From contig CM035355.1 in assembly GCA_020137815.1 (NCBI GenBank), positions 806,001 to 870,000 of the forward strand: a stretch of 64,000 nucleotides of DNA. Direction: 5' to 3'. The translations under genes were made by a program, and so were the position numbers. Positions 36,993 to 45,215 of the stretch are shown here, one piece after another (the stretch's first letter is position 1; the number at the start of each line of letters is the position of its first letter). Under the pieces are notes generated by a model that did not search any database, was not told the DNA's origin, and saw only the letters and a list, made by a program, of their open reading frames with translations. This DNA is from Hormiphora californensis. Lineage: Eukaryota > Animalia > Ctenophora.

Positions 36993-39900
36993 TTACCCCT
37001 TTAGAGAGGACATACCTGCTCGCATAACCTGGGGGAGGGGGAAACGGGTTAGAAACAGAAATTAAAACAAGGAACAAGAAAAATGAAGAACTGTATTTTG
37101 TTGTGGTCAAATTAGTAACTTGTCAAATATTTACCTCATCAACAATGAGAAGATTGGATGAGATGACAGTACAGGAGTTGAGAAGCTGCTTCTTCACACA
37201 GTAGTTATCCCAAATACCAGCCTCAGCGGGGTAGAACGCCTCCCCGGTGGTGAGGTCCAAACCAACTGGCCTGTCAACTCCCTTGTACTCTTGGAGCATC
37301 TTGACGAGGCAGTCCTGTGCGTCATGTCCAGCGTTCTGGGCCAGACACTTGGGGATGATGAGCATGGCAGTGGCAAAGGCCTCAACTCCAAGTCGAGCCT
37401 TGCCTCGGACTTCGTTCTTGTACTCGTTGAGAGCCTGAGAAAGAAGGGAAAGATAAAAACTTAGCAATATCAACTTGAAACACACAAAATATAACAATTT
37501 GAACAGAACTGTTTTAGCCAGATCAGGGGGGATCATTTAGTTACCTGGTAGATAGCGATCTCCATGGATCCGGCTCCAGGGACAACCTGTTGGTCCTCTA
37601 CGGCATTCTTGACAGCCCTGAGTCCATCCCTGACGGCATCCTTAATCTGAGTGATGGTGTGCTTGTTGGGTCCCTTGATCAGGATAGTGACACTCTGGGG
37701 GTTATCGCACTCCTCGATGAAGGAGAATTTGTCATCACCAAGAACGTGCTCGTAGAAGAGACCAGCATGACCGAGATGTTTGGGGGAGAGATCATCCAAG
37801 CTGTTCACTGCAGTTCCACCACATGCAAGGACAATTCGCTCCATGTTTCGGCGTTTGGCACGTCGAAGAGCAACGATTCCCTCCCGGGCAAGGGCGTCAA
37901 GAGAGTTAGGGTCAACTCCCTTCTGGTTGATAACAACGAAACCTTTGTCGGTTTGTCCGCAAACCTCTCGTTTCAGGTCAATAATCTGATGGAATTAGCG
38001 AAATAGTTAGTCGGTTGAAACTGAAACAATGTAATACATGATTTTATGAGTCTCGTATTTTGTTAATTTTTCATGTATCTTACCTGCTGGACTTTGTCAT
38101 CACAGAATGCCCGTTCAGCCTTGACAAGCTTCTCCCTCTGATCAGCGCTCTTGTAGAAGAATCCACTGTTGACCTCGCTCTTCTCGTACTCAAGACTGAC
38201 ATTGCAAGTCAGAATAAAAGCATCGGTGACTTTCTTCTTCATATCGGGGTGTCGGGCACCGTGATCCATTACAATTCCCTTGACCAACTGGGTGTCCATG
38301 TCGGTCTTGTGTTCCATAGTCATGATCTCAACCATGTGGAGGTCAATGGCCTCTCCCTCCTTCTGAATGGCAAGGACAGCGTCCACGATGCACTCAGTCA
38401 GATGGTCAGCAAGAGAGGATTTAACCTGAAGTGGGGGAGTCATGGTTTCAAACTTTTCAACACTACTTTAAACAAATTAATTTGAGGTGGTCCTTGTGGC
38501 TGCCTCAATGGTCGTTGCAGATAATGGCAAGAAGAAGAGAAACGAACGGCACAGCCACGACGAGACGAAGTCCACAGACGTAACATCATCCTGTCCCCAA
38601 CTTTCCTCTTCCAAGGATACTGTCACAAACTGTCCTACATGCTCCACAGGTTTCGTTGAATTTACGCCCTCTTATCAATCAATTCTGTGTGACAATTGTC
38701 AGTCCTGGTACCACCCAACATGTGCCAGTCTATCTGACCAACAATTCTCTAATCTTCAATTATCTGACGCCAAATGGTTCTGCCACAACTGTTGTCGTAT
38801 TCCTGATTTCCGGAAGGCCCAGCCACTGCAATGTGACTGGGGAGATGAAGATCTTATCTCCACCTTTCAGTTAGCGTCTAAAACAATAGCAACGTGGAGA
38901 CCTAATTTGTTTAATTTACCCGGTGGCTCTGTAGGAAGATCTTATGTGGCAGAGGCCACACGGCTAGTGACCGCTTGGGCGATCCCAACCCGCCTTGAGC
39001 GAATCTCAATCCACGCTCTCATGCTCATGGGACCGCTCCTATTACAGAACCCAGGAAAGAACACTAAACCGGGAGAACATCGTGAAATACTGAAACGCCG
39101 ACTAGATTTATGGAAGGGCGGGCAGTTCAATGAACTTCTTGCCGAGGGTAAGATCATCCAGTCTAGGCTTGCAAAAGGACCCGCCAGTAACTCTAATCCA
39201 CAGCGTACCTTTGCCCGACTCATGTTTCATGGAAGGGTAGGTGCAGCTTTGAGGGTCCTGTCCACCACACCATCTAAACCCCTCGAGATTACGGAGAAGG
39301 TTATTGACGAGCTGAAATCCAAACATCCGAAAGGAAAGGGAATCAGCTTTGAACACCTGTACAGCACTGATCCTGCACCCAAACCTGAACCTATAGTGTT
39401 CTATGACATCAGCGCCAAATCCATTAGGGATGCGGCAGGGACCACTAAAGGAGGGGCTGGGCCAAGCGGGACCACTGAGAAACTGTGGGCTAGAATGATC
39501 TGCAGCAAATCGTTTTCCAAGGAAGCTGATGCTTTAGCACACGCCCTCGCCCTCATGACCAGACGGTTATGTACTGTACATGTTGATCCTTCCACCATTT
39601 CCCCCCTTCTTGCATGCCGACTCATTGCCCTTGACAAGAACCCAGGCGTGAGACCAATCGGAGTCGGTGAAATCCTGCGCCGAATTATTGGACGAACAGT
39701 GTCCTGCCATCTCAGACCTGATATTCTCGAGGCAGCAGGCCCACTCCAGCTGGCAGCGGGTCAACAGGGAGGAATTGAGGCTGCGGTACACTCCATGAAC
39801 ACCATGTTCCACGACGATGGTACGGAAGGCGTTCTCCTTGCTGATGCATCAAATGCATTCAATGTGATCAACAGGCAGACTGCCCTCGTTAACTTGCGAT

Positions 39901-42900
39901 TTCTCTGTCCCAACCTTTCAACCTTTGCTACCAATTTCTACCGCTCCCCCACCAACCTCTACTTATCCAATGGCCAAATTATCCTTAGCTCAGAGGGAAC
40001 TACCCAAGGATGCAACATCGCCTCTCCGTTTTACTCTATAAGTGTACGACCACTGATCAACTCACTATCGCTATCTAATGCTAAGACTATATTCTACGCA
40101 GATGATGGCGCGGCTGCTGGAAAACTTGCTGCTGTGAAACAATGGTGGGACACACTGTGTCTTGCGGGTCCAGGCTTGGGTTACTTCCCTAATGCTAAAA
40201 AGTCCATCCTCCTAGTGAAACCCCAATTCCTCGCTTCGGCCAAGTCCTTGTTTAGCAACACAAACATTCAAATCCTGACAGAAGGAACAAGGTATCTAGG
40301 TGCCCCTCTTGGCTCTGATAGTTTCAGGGATCATTTAGTTACCTGGTAGATAGCGATCTCCATGGATCCGGCTCCAGGGACAACCTGTTGGTCCTCTACG
40401 GCATTCTTGACAGCCCTGAGTCCATCCCTGACGGCATCCTTAATCTGAGTGATGGTGTGCTTGTTGGGTCCCTTGATCAGGATAGTGACACTCTGGGGGT
40501 TATCGCACTCCTCGATGAAGGAGAATTTGTCATCACCAAGAACGTGCTCATAGAAGAGACCAGCATGACCGAGATGTTTGGGGGAGAGATCATCCAAGCT
40601 GTTCACTGCAGTTCCACCACATGCAAGGACAATTCGCTCCATGTTTCGGCGTTTGGCACGTCGGAGTGCAACGATTCCCTCCCGGGCAAGGGCGTCAAGA
40701 GAGTTAGGGTCAACTCCCTTCTGGTTGATAACAACGAAACCTTTGTCGGTTTGTCCGCAAACCTCTCGTTTCAGGTCAATAATCTGATGGAATTAGCGAA
40801 ATAGTTAGTCGGTTGAAACTGAAATAATGTAATACATGATTTTATGAGTCTCGTATTTTGTTAATTTATTATTTTCTTACCTGCTGGACTTTGTCATCAC
40901 AGAATGCGCGTTCAGCCTTGACAAGCTTCTCCCTCTGATCAGCGCTCTTGTAGAAGAATCCACTGTTGACCTCGCTCTTCTCGTACTCAAGACTGACATT
41001 GCAAGTCAGAATGAAAGCATCGGTGACTTTCTTCTTCATATCGGGGTGTCGGGCACCGTGATCCATTACAATTCCCTTGACCAACTGGGTGTCCATGTCG
41101 GTCTTGTGTTCCATAGTCATGATCTCAACCATGTGGAGGTCAATGGCCTCTCCCTCCTTCTGAATGGCAAGGACAGCGTCCACAATGCACTCAGTAAGAT
41201 GGTCAGCAAGAGAGGATTTAACCTGAAGTGGGGGAGTAATGGTTTCAAACTTTTCAACACTACTTTAAACAAATTAATTTGAGGTGGTCCTTGTGGCTGC
41301 CTCAATGGTCGTTGCAGATAATGGCAAGAAGAAGAGAAACGAACGGCACAGCCACGACGAGACGAAGTCCACAGACGTAACATCATCCTGTCCCCAACTT
41401 TCCTCTTCCAAGGATACTGTCACAAACTGTCCTACATGCTCCACAGGTTTCGTTGAATTTACGCCCTCTTATCAATCAATTCTGTGTGACAATTGTCAGT
41501 CCTGGTACCACCCAACATGTGCCAGTCTATCTGACCAACAATTCTCTAATCTTCAATTATCTGACGCCAAATGGTTCTGCCACAACTGTTGTCGTATTCC
41601 TGATTTCCGGAAGGCCCAGCCACTGCAATGTGACTGGGGAGATGAAGATCTTATCTCCACCTTTCAGTTAGCGTCTAAAACAATAGCAACGTGGAGACCT
41701 AATTTGTTTAATTTACCCGGTGGCTCTGTAGGAAGATCTTATGTGGCAGAGGCCACACGGCTAGTGACCGCTTGGGCGATCCCAACCCGCCTTGAGCGAA
41801 TCTCAATCCACGCTCTCATGCTCATGGGACCGCTCCTATTACAGAACCCAGGAAAGAACACTAAACCGGGAGAACATCGTGAAATACTGAAACGCCGACT
41901 AGATTTATGGAAGGGCGGGCAGTTCAATGAACTTCTTGCCGAGGGTAAGATCATCCAGTCTAGGCTTGCAAAAGGACCCGCCAGTAACTCTAATCCACAG
42001 CGTACCTTTGCCCGACTCATGTTTCATGGAAGGGTAGGTGCAGCTTTGAGGGTCCTGTCCACCACACCATCTAAACCCCTCGAGATTACGGAGAAGGTTA
42101 TTGACGAGCTGAAATCCAAACATCCGAAAGGAAAGGGAATCAGCTTTGAACACCTGTACAGCACTGATCCTGCACCCAAACCTGAACCTATAGTGTTCTA
42201 TGACATCAGCGCCAAATCCATTAGGGATGCGGCAGGGACCACTAAAGGAGGGGCTGGGCCAAGCGGGACCACTGAGAAACTGTGGGCTAGAATGATCTGC
42301 AGCAAATCGTTTTCCAAGGAAGCTGATGCTTTAGCACACGCCCTCGCCCTCATGACCAGACGGTTATGTACTGTACATGTTGATCCTTCCACCATTTCCC
42401 CCCTTCTTGCATGCCGACTCATTGCCCTTGACAAGAACCCAGGCGTGAGACCAATCGGAGTCGGTGAAATCCTGCGCCGAATTATTGGACGAACAGTGTC
42501 CTGCCATCTCAGACCTGATATTCTCGAGGCAGCAGGCCCACTCCAGCTGGCAGCGGGTCAACAGGGAGGAATTGAGGCTGCGGTACACTCCATGAACACC
42601 ATGTTCCACGACGATGGTACGGAAGGCGTTCTCCTTGCTGATGCATCAAATGCATTCAATGTGATCAACAGGCAGACTGCCCTCGTTAACTTGCGATTTC
42701 TCTGTCCCAACCTTTCAACCTTTGCTACCAATTTCTACCGCTCCCCCACCAACCTCTACTTATCCAATGGCCAAATTATCCTTAGCTCAGAGGGAACTAC
42801 CCAAGGATGCAACATCGCCTCTCCGTTTTACTCTATAAGTGTACGACCACTGATCAACTCACTATCGCTATCTAATGCTAAGACTATATTCTACGCAGAT

Positions 42901-45215
42901 GATGGCGCGGCTGCTGGAAAACTTGCTGCTGTGAAACAATGGTGGGACACACTGTGTCTTGCGGGTCCAGGCTTGGGTTACTTCCCTAATGCTAAAAAGT
43001 CCATCCTCCTAGTGAAACCCCAATTCCTCGCTTCGGCCAAGTCCTTGTTTAGCAACACAAACATTCAAATCCTGACAGAAGGAACAAGGTATCTAGGTGC
43101 CCCTCTTGGCTCTGATAGTTTCAGGGATCAGTTTGTTTCAGACCAAGTGAGCGGCTGGTGCCGTCAGCTAGAGGAACTTTCATCTGCCTCTGAAACGGAA
43201 CCGCAAGCGTCTTTCTCAGCTTTCTGTGTGGGATTATCTAAAAAGTGGCTGTTCTTGATGCGTACTACACCCAATATATCACACCTCTTTCTCCCTCTAG
43301 AGCACACCATCAGGACTCTCTTCCTCCCCAAAACTATAACTCCCCACTTCAGCGATACCCACAGAAACATTTTCAGTCTCCCTGCTAGGAATGGAGGTAT
43401 TGGCATATCTGATCCCACCAAAATCGCGGACGATGAGTATGCTAGATCTGTTGAAGCTACTGCCCCTCTTTCTGAACTCATAAACGAACAGAACACTCAT
43501 ATTACCTCAGAGAGAGCGGACAGAGCCACAGTGGATCTCAGTGTTGCCAAACACAAGGTTCTAACGGCAAAGAGGGCTAAACAAAAATGCGACCTTGAAA
43601 CTGCATCAGCTGAGCTAGACCCCCGACAACAACGTCTCCATGAGGAGCTGTGCCAACGCGGAGCCTCCACCTGGGTAACAACCCTCCCTCTCGCTGAACA
43701 CGGCTTCCTTCTCAACAAAGGGGAGTTCCACGACGCAATGTCCTTACGGTATGATTTCCCCATTGAAGGTATATCCCATACCTGCATGTGTGGAAAGCCT
43801 AACAGTATGGAACACTGTCTGTCATGTCCTCTTGGTGGCTATGTTCACCTCCGCCACAATCAGATAAGGGACCTCACCGCTAATCTTCTCTCCGAGGCTG
43901 GATGCACAGACGTTACTATTGAACCACATCTCCTTCCCATCACTGGAGAGAAATTCAAATACAAGAGTGCCAACACCGAGGATCAAGCCAGGCTTGACGT
44001 GTCTGCTAGGAAGGTATGGGTCGACATGGACAAAACGTTCCTTGACATCAGAGTTTTTAACTCCCGTGCAGACTCTAACATCAAAAAGTCATTGAAATCT
44101 GCCTTGGCCTCTCACGAGAAAGAGAAAAAGAGGGTGTACAATGAACGAATCTTGGAAGTAGAGAAAGCCTCTTTCACACCCATTGTTTTCTCCACCACCG
44201 GAACCATGGGACGCGAAGCAGAAAGGTTCTACCGCAGACTGGCAGTTCTCCTTTCCGGGAAAACTAAACAATCCATCCCTGATGCGGTACGCTACATCCG
44301 GCAGAGATTATCCTTTTGTCTCCTCAAAACTCTCATCGTCAGCCTCCGGGGTTACCGAGGGAAGACTATTACACCATACTATTCAAGTAGTATAGATATT
44401 AATTTATTGTATGTTTAATTTATTACCACAGTGTGCTTATATATAATTTGATTGTTATCCGTATAATTTTAAACCTCTTTTCCCAAAAGTAATGGTAACA
44501 ATTAACAAACCACATATAATGCTTCAAAGAAAGTTATTTATACCCGGTATTAAATGCTAACATTCCCCTATATGTGTACCTTGGTTCGGAGAGAAGTCCT
44601 GGCAACATTGATAAGGTCATCCCTGGAGCATTTCTTCTGGGCCATGGAATCCAAAACTTGGATAGCCTTCTTCTTCGCCAAGTCGAAACCTTCAGCCGCA
44701 ATACGGGGGTGAAGTCCGTCTCCGATATATACCTTGGCCTGCTTGAGGAGCTCTCCAATGATCAGGACGTTGGAAGTAGTTCCGTCACCGGTAATATCGT
44801 CCTGGAAAGAAATTTAGGGATTAAAACTCTCGTCTAATGTTCTTGTACGTTCATTATTTTCCAATCCCTGACGTTCTCTTACCTGAGCAGTAGCAACACG
44901 AGCGATAAGAGAGGCAGTGGGATGCTGAATTTGCATTTCGTGGAGAAGGACGTTTCCGTCCTTAGTGATCTTGATATCTCCAGCTCCACCGACCAGCATC
45001 TTCATGGTACCCTTGGGTCCAAGATTAGTCCTGAGGACATCTTGAAGTCCCATGGCAGCTGGAATAAAGGAGTGTTAAAAACTGACAACAATGGTAAAAA
45101 CGTATAATACAGGAGTGACTAGACTGGCTCGTTCCTTACCGCTGATGTTCAGGTCGAGCGCCTGGGCGGCTCGGGCAACCTCTGCCTTGGGGTTGAGCTT
45201 TTTTACTGCTGCCAT
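36993..45215 (-). CDS. CCT6: T-complex protein 1 subunit zeta (chaperonin CCT6); exons 4-5 duplicated in this assembly
   Basis: Exons 45215-45140, 45058-44883, 44801-44580, 41222-40881, 40783-40343, [duplicates 38425-38084, 37985-37545], 37434-37135, 37028-36993. Motifs [26 protein letters not shown] and DHGARHPDM; C-terminus [10 protein letters not shown]. Confidence 0.95.
38445..40333 (+). mobile_element. 3'-truncated duplicate of the CRE-like retrotransposon (SL + PHD + RT, no RLE)
   Basis: ORF 38487-40349 is identical to the first ~616 aa of ORF 41284-44418, then runs into CCT6 intron sequence at the duplication junction. Confidence 0.88.
41242..41283 (+). other. Spliced-leader (SL) exon sequence forming the 5' end of the retrotransposon (second copy at 38445-38486)
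   Basis: GTTTCAAACTTTTCAACACTACTTTAAACAAATTAATTTGAG matches my recollection of the ctenophore trans-splicing leader (not verifiable here). It lies between the left TSD and the element ORF, 21 nt before ATG 41305. Confidence 0.8.
41305..44418 (+). CDS. Retrotransposon ORF: PHD finger - reverse transcriptase - CCHC knuckle - RLE endonuclease (~1037 aa)
   Basis: PHD CPTC..CDNC..H..C..CHNC (41428-41589). RT motifs [37 protein letters not shown] (42892-42903) and YLG, followed by [10 protein letters not shown]-terminal [26 protein letters not shown] and EKEK (PD-D/ExK type). Confidence 0.93.
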   Translation: MVVADNGKKKRNERHSHDETKSTDVTSSCPQLSSSKDTVTNCPTCSTGFVEFTPSYQSILCDNCQSWYHPTCASLSDQQFSNLQLSDAKWFCHNCCRIPDFRKAQPLQCDWGDEDLISTFQLASKTIATWRPNLFNLPGGSVGRSYVAEATRLVTAWAIPTRLERISIHALMLMGPLLLQNPGKNTKPGEHREILKRRLDLWKGGQFNELLAEGKIIQSRLAKGPASNSNPQRTFARLMFHGRVGAALRVLSTTPSKPLEITEKVIDELKSKHPKGKGISFEHLYSTDPAPKPEPIVFYDISAKSIRDAAGTTKGGAGPSGTTEKLWARMICSKSFSKEADALAHALALMTRRLCTVHVDPSTISPLLACRLIALDKNPGVRPIGVGEILRRIIGRTVSCHLRPDILEAAGPLQLAAGQQGGIEAAVHSMNTMFHDDGTEGVLLADASNAFNVINRQTALVNLRFLCPNLSTFATNFYRSPTNLYLSNGQIILSSEGTTQGCNIASPFYSISVRPLINSLSLSNAKTIFYADDGAAAGKLAAVKQWWDTLCLAGPGLGYFPNAKKSILLVKPQFLASAKSLFSNTNIQILTEGTRYLGAPLGSDSFRDQFVSDQVSGWCRQLEELSSASETEPQASFSAFCVGLSKKWLFLMRTTPNISHLFLPLEHTIRTLFLPKTITPHFSDTHRNIFSLPARNGGIGISDPTKIADDEYARSVEATAPLSELINEQNTHITSERADRATVDLSVAKHKVLTAKRAKQKCDLETASAELDPRQQRLHEELCQRGASTWVTTLPLAEHGFLLNKGEFHDAMSLRYDFPIEGISHTCMCGKPNSMEHCLSCPLGGYVHLRHNQIRDLTANLLSEAGCTDVTIEPHLLPITGEKFKYKSANTEDQARLDVSARKVWVDMDKTFLDIRVFNSRADSNIKKSLKSALASHEKEKKRVYNERILEVEKASFTPIVFSTTGTMGREAERFYRRLAVLLSGKTKQSIPDAVRYIRQRLSFCLLKTLIVSLRGYRGKTITPYYSSSIDINLLYV

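Follow-up and report, generated by a model that had tools for sequence, protein, structure and literature searches.

We analysed a 64,000-nt stretch of the genome of the ctenophore Hormiphora californensis (assembly GCA_020137815.1, contig CM035355.1, positions 806,001 to 870,000 of the forward strand; hereafter the window) and found that positions 41243-44487 of its plus strand are occupied by a full-length retrotransposon of the type that lacks long terminal repeats (non-LTR), which is bounded by an 8-bp target-site duplication (TSD), AGTAATGG, and begins with a genome-encoded copy of the host's own spliced leader (SL). We consider it probable that this is an R2-type retrotransposon without site specificity, the RNA of which was SL-trans-spliced and then reverse-transcribed over its full length. 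In the cycle that we propose, element RNA would receive the 43-nt SL by trans-splicing, like most host mRNAs, and target-primed reverse transcription (TPRT) would copy it up to the capped 5' end, so that full-length insertions would start with the SL inside the TSD. We infer the trans-splicing step itself, as well as the role of the SL, which would supply a cap and a 5' end to an element that has no obvious promoter of its own.

Anatomy of the element and its insertion site

The element and its surroundings comprise the following features (UTR, untranslated region; ORF, open reading frame), all in window coordinates:

41221-44577, minus strand: intron of the host CCT-zeta gene, with the element inside it in antisense orientation
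41235-41242: left TSD, AGTAATGG
41243-41283, plus strand: genome-encoded copy of the host SL, 41 nt, in which the 1-2 nt (AG) at the start of the 43-nt SL are missing and which ends in TTAATTTGAG
41284-41304, plus strand: 5' UTR of 21 nt, GTGGTCC...CCTCA
41305-44418, plus strand: intact single ORF of 1037 amino acids plus stop (ATG at 41305, stop codon at 44416-44418)
41428-41589, plus strand: PHD finger, residues 42-95
42439-42906, plus strand: reverse transcriptase (RT) core, residues 379-534
43783-44352, plus strand: CCHC zinc knuckle and restriction-like endonuclease (RLE)
44419-44487, plus strand: 3' UTR of 69 nt, ending in AAA (a short A run) and common to most 5'-truncated copies of the family
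44488-44495: right TSD, identical to the 8-mer at 41235-41242

An initial annotation, made from the letters alone, had described an insertion between TSDs, with a 42-nt leader, a 21-nt UTR and an uninterrupted PHD-RT-RLE frame. The two duplications, the UTR and the frame were all borne out, the last by Pfam domains, a C-terminal structural model and Foldseek searches (see below). The leader stood as such, with its length corrected to 41 nt: the G at 41242 is only possibly SL-derived, and a ninth base of the duplication, T, is ambiguous, being common to the duplication and to the start of the SL.

On either side lie minus-strand exons of CCT zeta (TIGR02347, E 3e-50 and 6e-49), and an RNA contig connects 41220 directly with 44578, across boundaries that read CT..AC on the plus strand and hence, on the minus strand, GT..AG. 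With the element, the intron thus has a length of 3357 nt; without it, it would measure ~104 nt, which agrees with the ordinary CCT6 intron of ~100 bp that had been expected upon excision. The antisense orientation of the element relative to CCT zeta had gone unremarked before. The SL lies inside the TSD, within an intron of a protein-coding gene, which supports the initial reading that it was carried in by an insertion at a non-SL site.

The 41-nt leader of the element equals the published H. californensis SL (PMC8527503), and the exon in the SL RNA genes described below has the same sequence. The published SL was found on 56% of Iso-Seq reads, and 718 genome copies of it were called leader loci (PMC8527503). 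In our search of the genome at up to three mismatches, the 41-mer gave 507 matches and its reversed control none; two matches fall within the window, compared with an expectation of zero. In a marine oligo-dT RNA run, many contigs pile up on the bin that contains the SL, the loose ends listed continue after 41283-41290 into unrelated sequences, and a template-switch adapter tail (...GCAGAGTACGGGGA) stands immediately before 41242 in RNA contigs. The leader equals the published SL and follows a cDNA adapter on many unrelated transcripts, which bears out its identification as the ctenophore SL in the initial annotation.

The encoded protein and the class of the element

The ORF reads, in this order, a PHD finger, a reverse transcriptase, a CCHC knuckle and an RLE. 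Pfam returned only two domains above its curated cut-offs, the PHD finger (PF00628, E 1.4e-5) and the reverse transcriptase (RVT_1, E 2e-8), and no Ulp1 protease domain. The ADD motif of the RT is invariant in an alignment of homologues, as are the residues of the knuckle (C827, C829, H837, C841) and E873, D898, D914, E938 and K941 in the region that follows it. Sequence searches of the Protein Data Bank (PDB) with the ORF did not reach R2, and a profile search of the PDB weakly matched residues 937-987 of R2Bm. An AlphaFold model of residues 780-1037 (predicted local distance difference test, pLDDT, 83; predicted template-modelling score, pTM, 0.79) had seven R2 retrotransposon proteins as its top Foldseek matches in the PDB (E 8e-6 to 4e-4), followed by PD-(D/E)XK nucleases; as modelled, the endonuclease has the RLE fold. 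Homologues number more than 1100 proteins of ~1000 amino acids at 40-57% identity, including one from Mnemiopsis leidyi as well as cnidarian-labelled clusters.

The best PDB sequence matches of the PHD finger are the PHD domains of Pygopus and DIDO, and there are homologue clusters with PHD_Pygo. This Pygopus-like PHD finger occupies the place that DNA-binding zinc fingers or Myb domains hold in R2-type elements. Through this finger the element may be tethered to histone marks and not to a DNA sequence, as would suit the random choice of targets described in the next section.

With a reverse transcriptase, a C-terminal CCHC knuckle plus RLE, and the footprints of TPRT, the element is an RLE-bearing non-LTR retrotransposon of the R2 supergroup. 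Target specificity is the rule in four RLE clades (CRE, R2, R4 and NeSL) and the exception in HERO (PMC4640811). CRE elements are defined by site-specific insertion into an SL RNA gene, and the random targeting seen here, at odds with the 'CRE-like' label of the initial annotation, is unlike CRE: the copies read of the present family have no common target, and the SL genes found keep their exon-intron junction. NeSL elements target SL1 or other small-RNA genes and many of them carry Ulp1, as opposed to the random targets and the PHD plus RVT_1 content of our element. It resembles HERO in bearing an RLE and lacking target specificity (PMC4640811), a likeness in behaviour only, clade membership being a matter of RT phylogeny.

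Copies of the family and their insertion behaviour

A DNA search of the genome with the element recovered the window copy, a second full-length copy on C12 that is 97% identical, a duplicated partial copy next to the window copy (see below) and ~15 5'-truncated copies. We read 16 copies, 14 of which are 5'-truncated. Where recognisable, the TSDs of the family measure 7-13 bp and are all different, and no target consensus emerged among the copies read. Most copies end at the common end of the 3' UTR with a short A run, one (L039) stopping ~20 nt short, and the A tails of the 5'-truncated copies are 0-8 nt long.

The copy on C12, at 270309-273551, is flanked by a duplication of its own, AAAAATCG, and shares the SL/GTGG junction (a slash marks junctions throughout), but its SL lacks approximately the first 5 nt; in a sister copy (L043) the SL is reduced to its last 8 nt. 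The ORFs of the window and C12 copies are both open and differ at 89 nucleotides, 75 of them at third codon positions, which amounts to 76 synonymous and 11 non-synonymous codon changes. The SL and 5' UTR differ at 0 of 57 nt, and the 3' UTR at 2 of 69 nt. The excess of synonymous changes indicates that the two lineages diverged under selection for a working protein. We conclude that the element is recently active and that its integration is not site-specific.

The 5' UTR is identical in four of four genomic copies and the end of the SL always stands directly before it; no SL-less copy of this UTR was found in the assembly. The full-length copies are dispersed and have an SL at their head, and none lies within the SL RNA genes found.

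The SL RNA genes

Compared with the 507 genomic SL matches, the real SL RNA genes are few, approximately 16. They lie at the following places:

C5:6431345-6432003 (L086/L087), C9:4528289-4528870 and C11:221861-222519: divergent pairs, ~530-610 bp apart
C12:4023262-4023324: single gene
C13:3181656-3195390: array with ~740-bp spacing

These genes are recognised by a conserved upstream sequence (...CCATCAGC/AGTTTCAAAC) and by a donor and intron start GTAAGCTGAG (GTAAG). Their RNA is predicted to form three stem-loops, with a single-stranded CUUUUGG Sm-like site between stem-loops 2 and 3 (fold z -4.1). At 41243, by comparison, a CCT-zeta exon lies upstream and the element's UTR and ORF lie downstream, and no real SL gene is involved in the SL of the element.

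This bears on one of two origins considered in the initial annotation, namely a donor copy that resides in an SL RNA gene and uses the SL promoter for its transcription, the dispersed copies being off-target insertions. The idea draws on the GAG/GT junction of the element, which resembles the SL donor, and several relatives of the element read GAG/GTATGA at this point. Nevertheless, the intron of the SL gene starts with GTAAGCTGAG while the element starts with GTGGTCCTTG; a promoter-plus-SL pattern and an SL-plus-intron pattern gave 15 matches each, at the same loci on C5, C9, C11, C12 and in the C13 array (two members of the array match just one of the two patterns), leaving the SL genes unoccupied; the ~740-bp spacing of the array excludes an insert of 3.2 kb; and the copies read have no common target sequence. 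We therefore reject an SL-gene source for this assembly and regard it as very unlikely altogether.

SL-headed repeats across the genome and in other organisms

Of the 507 SL copies in the genome, approximately 97% are something other than SL genes. The 70 SL loci that we read belong to 32 repeat families with unrelated upstream flanks. Related RLE families, at 64-69% nucleotide identity, also begin with the exact SL and then continue with different UTRs. In most of the other SL-headed families, the opening ORF has 250-490 amino acids, belongs to no Pfam family and may be ORF1-like. We also considered placing the other families that start with GTGG...CCTCAA in the same RLE clade as the element, and rejected this, as tblastn relates only two of them (L004 and L078).

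Within one family, the SL junction differs by CAG between one locus (L001) and three others (L010, L014, L020), which looks like alternative use of acceptors. Three further families (L005/L025, L007 and L016) keep TTTCAG directly after the SL. Taken together, and judged from these junctions, the CAG difference and the retained TTTCAG suggest tandem or alternative trans-splice acceptors. A search of the genome for an SL-SL junction gave no matches.

The CCTCAA of the element's 5' UTR can pair with the end of the SL (UUGAG/G) in a predicted hairpin that is not significant (z -1.0 to -1.7). CTCAA follows the SL in 10 of the 32 families, versus 0-4 in control windows, a count that is inflated by related 5' UTRs, the families being non-independent.

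Homologues of the element on marine metagenome contigs, at 37-43% amino acid identity, carry leaders of their own at these places:

L091 1-70; L092 266-362; L099 28-102; L101 1-70; L124 744-812: SL-like leaders on metagenome homologues

In L091, L092, L099 and L101/L124, these leaders are AT-rich and lie 14-50 nt upstream of the ORF. They align with the Hormiphora SL and yet differ from it; they start like AGTTTnAA, end in TTGAG and abut the element at the same point. Three of the metagenome lineages read on as GAG/GTATGA, similar to a strong 5' splice site. The leader of L101 stands at the start of its contig, and L124, of the same family, has unrelated sequence upstream.

Several other arrangements were seen among the SL loci. 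In six of them (L002, L003, L009, L012, L019 and L021, around position 1500), a hammerhead-like core (CTGATGA / stem / GAAAC) follows the SL without a gap, and two of these (L009 and L012) have a second, inverted SL in head-to-head orientation. By their appearance these loci look like Penelope-type repeats; an Rfam search of the families with SL+CTGATGA...GAAAC returned no hammerhead at the gathering threshold or at E up to 1, and gave generic hairpin matches on the inverted SL pairs only. The commonest of the sampled families in which GT follows the SL accounts for 9 of the 30 such loci fetched (L061, L073, L074, L076, L077, L079, L081, L083 and L090), starts with GTTTCGTTTTTCC and has an ORF of 404 amino acids without a Pfam match. 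On C9, at ~2248.3 kb (L054, 3120-3340), two different elements of the RLE clade stand head-to-head 180 bp apart, both with their SLs trimmed to the same last 12 nt (AATTAATTTGAG). Finally, around position 400 of L053, the SL has a tripled internal segment (TTTTCAACACTAC), like the product of slippage or of template jumping at the 5' end.

Origin of the leader at the 5' end

The initial annotation had held that the reverse-transcribed template was an RNA with the SL at its head. This gains from the junction, which lies exactly at the end of the SL exon, from the second full-length copy, in which it is the same, and from relatives that carry other SL-like leaders. Because the exact exon-end junction recurs in independent insertions and lineages, and because unrelated families carry a leader that equals the host SL, trans-splicing followed by reverse transcription fits best.

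The SL could also have been joined on at the DNA or cDNA level, by a jump of the RT from the RNA of the element to SL RNA or a different SL-bearing mRNA, as in U6/L1 chimeras. The RTs of long interspersed nuclear elements (LINEs) are known to switch templates at 5' ends, and the slippage-like repeats inside the SL of L053 could be cited in its favour. A jump onto SL RNA would, however, bring the intron of that RNA along, and independent copies and lineages share one and the same junction, the position of which is conserved across species. We consider such a jump highly improbable as the source of the leader.

Several observations weigh against the trans-splicing account. The SL is DNA-encoded in every copy, and no RNA read obtained shows SL addition to an element transcript; with the SL encoded in the DNA, even an RNA contig that contained both SL and element would not prove splicing. 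The body of the element is covered only by low-depth RNA contigs of a marine metatranscriptome, at 90-97% identity, for which DNA carry-over is possible. The assembly contains no SL-less source copy with an outron. The leaders of the metagenome homologues, being SL-like by alignment only, would give comparative support and not proof.

With four of four copies of the 5' UTR preceded by the SL, either the integrated SL is reused or the master copies are missing from the assembly. One form of reuse, put forward in the initial annotation, would make the integrated SL itself an outron: SL-headed copies would be transcribed by read-through, a fresh SL would be spliced on at the terminal AG of the old one, and the same capped RNA would arise without a promoter of the element's own. 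This would account for a family that evolves under purifying selection with every 5' UTR copy SL-preceded and with no SL-less master, for the absence of differences over the 57 nt of SL and 5' UTR despite a synonymous divergence of ~10% between the two lineages, and for an SL identical to that of the host in families that are only ~65% alike; the CAG difference between L001 and its three relatives would likewise fit re-splicing at a nearby acceptor. The acceptor would, however, be GAG, a weak one, G being the least used base at position -3 of 3' splice sites, and three families retain a strong TTTCAG right after the integrated SL. Tandem SL-SL relics, which were also sought by analogy with dinoflagellate retrogenes, are absent, and the window copy is antisense to CCT zeta, so that host read-through cannot feed it. 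On the strength of these sequence patterns, we hold renewal at the integrated SL to be a possible but doubtful addition to the scheme.

Somewhat more doubtful still is that the integrated SL and 5' UTR would serve as an internal promoter or initiator, with transcription starting at or near the first base of the SL, the SL being inherited and trans-splicing having taken place only at the origin of each lineage. Internal promoters occur in many LINEs, in Ascaris the SL sequence doubles as a promoter element of its gene, and the lack of SL-less masters in the assembly and the common occurrence of 5'-shortened SLs among copies would both be in keeping with internal initiation. An inherited SL should drift, though, and RLE-type, ORF1-type and hammerhead-like families all carry the exact host SL; the homologues from other organisms are preceded by SL-like leaders of a different sequence. 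We thus retain trans-splicing of the element RNA, followed by full-length reverse transcription, as the probable origin of the leader.

A tandem duplication around the element

The window copy overlaps a tandem duplication that had not been noticed before:

37529-43137: two units of a 2.8-kb tandem duplication (37529-40340 and 40327-43137), made up of host exons and the 5' part of the element
38443-40340, plus strand: second SL and first 1.9 kb of the element, ended at 40340 by the duplication and 99.9% identical over 1895 nt

The units are 2812 bp long and 99.47% identical. Twelve of their 14 mismatches fall in the 914-bp host part and two in the 1895-bp element part. The duplication may be a real event that followed the insertion, or two haplotypes may have been joined in the assembly; a real duplication would interrupt the order of the CCT-zeta exons.

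Relation to known systems and implications

CRE1/CRE2, SLACS and CZAR of trypanosomatids and NeSL-1 of nematodes insert site-specifically into SL RNA genes. Like them, the Hormiphora element is a single-ORF, RLE-type non-LTR element physically associated with SL sequence; unlike them, it sits at random sites and has the SL exon at its own 5' end, and none of the ~16 SL genes is occupied. We know of no SL-headed HERO element. R2 is specific for ribosomal DNA, and its 5' ribozyme, similar to that of hepatitis delta virus, self-cleaves to leave an uncapped 5' end. The two have in common an RLE with the same C-terminal fold and, on the proposed cycle, a 5' end that is obtained without a promoter of their own, by processing of a longer RNA; in Hormiphora, in contrast, host trans-splicing would provide a capped leader that is then copied into DNA.

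In dinoflagellates, a DNA-encoded DinoSL at the 5' end of retrogenes is taken to prove an mRNA intermediate (PMC6050394, PMC5585692). The Hormiphora families likewise have an SL in the DNA at the head of a retroposed sequence. The dinoflagellate examples, by contrast, are retrocopies of host genes, often with tandem relic SLs, whereas those of Hormiphora are autonomous families with a single SL. In Hydra, ~30% of the Iso-Seq reads of transposable elements start with the host SL (PMC12220107), so the RNAs of such elements can use host trans-splicing; there the SL is described at the RNA level, whereas in Hormiphora it lies in inserted DNA, bounded by TSDs, across families. RLE elements that target SL genes, SL relics on dinoflagellate retrogenes and SLs on Hydra transposon transcripts were therefore already known. 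The searchable literature yielded no description of SL-headed autonomous retroelement families in ctenophores that make up nearly all genomic SL copies.

The 718 published leader loci can now be re-read: approximately 16 SL genes were found here, and every other copy that we read is the 5' end of an insertion of a repeat family. Most of the ~500 genomic leader copies thus appear to be 5' ends of retroelements and not leader genes. For annotation this means that Iso-Seq first exons placed at the 'nearest SL locus' mostly sit on transposon heads. The SL also offers a built-in tag for full-length retrotransposition events.

The families described here would be autonomous non-LTR elements copied from SL-capped RNAs, with the leader included in full-length copies; alongside internal promoters (as in L1) and ribozymes (as in R2), this may be a third way to obtain a defined 5' end. 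More speculatively, and at no better than modest odds, ctenophore retroelements of several classes may have surrendered their own promoter and 5'-end control to the SL machinery of the host. The SL in the inserted DNA would then be a working part, renewed once per cycle when trans-splicing takes place at the integrated copy or next to it, the 5' UTR may through co-evolution have come to pair with the end of the SL, and most of the ~500-700 SL loci would be self-propagating, SL-capped retroelements kept across ctenophore species. In any case, the classical link between the two is reversed: in CRE, SLACS and NeSL the element lies inside the SL gene, and in Hormiphora the SL lies inside the element.

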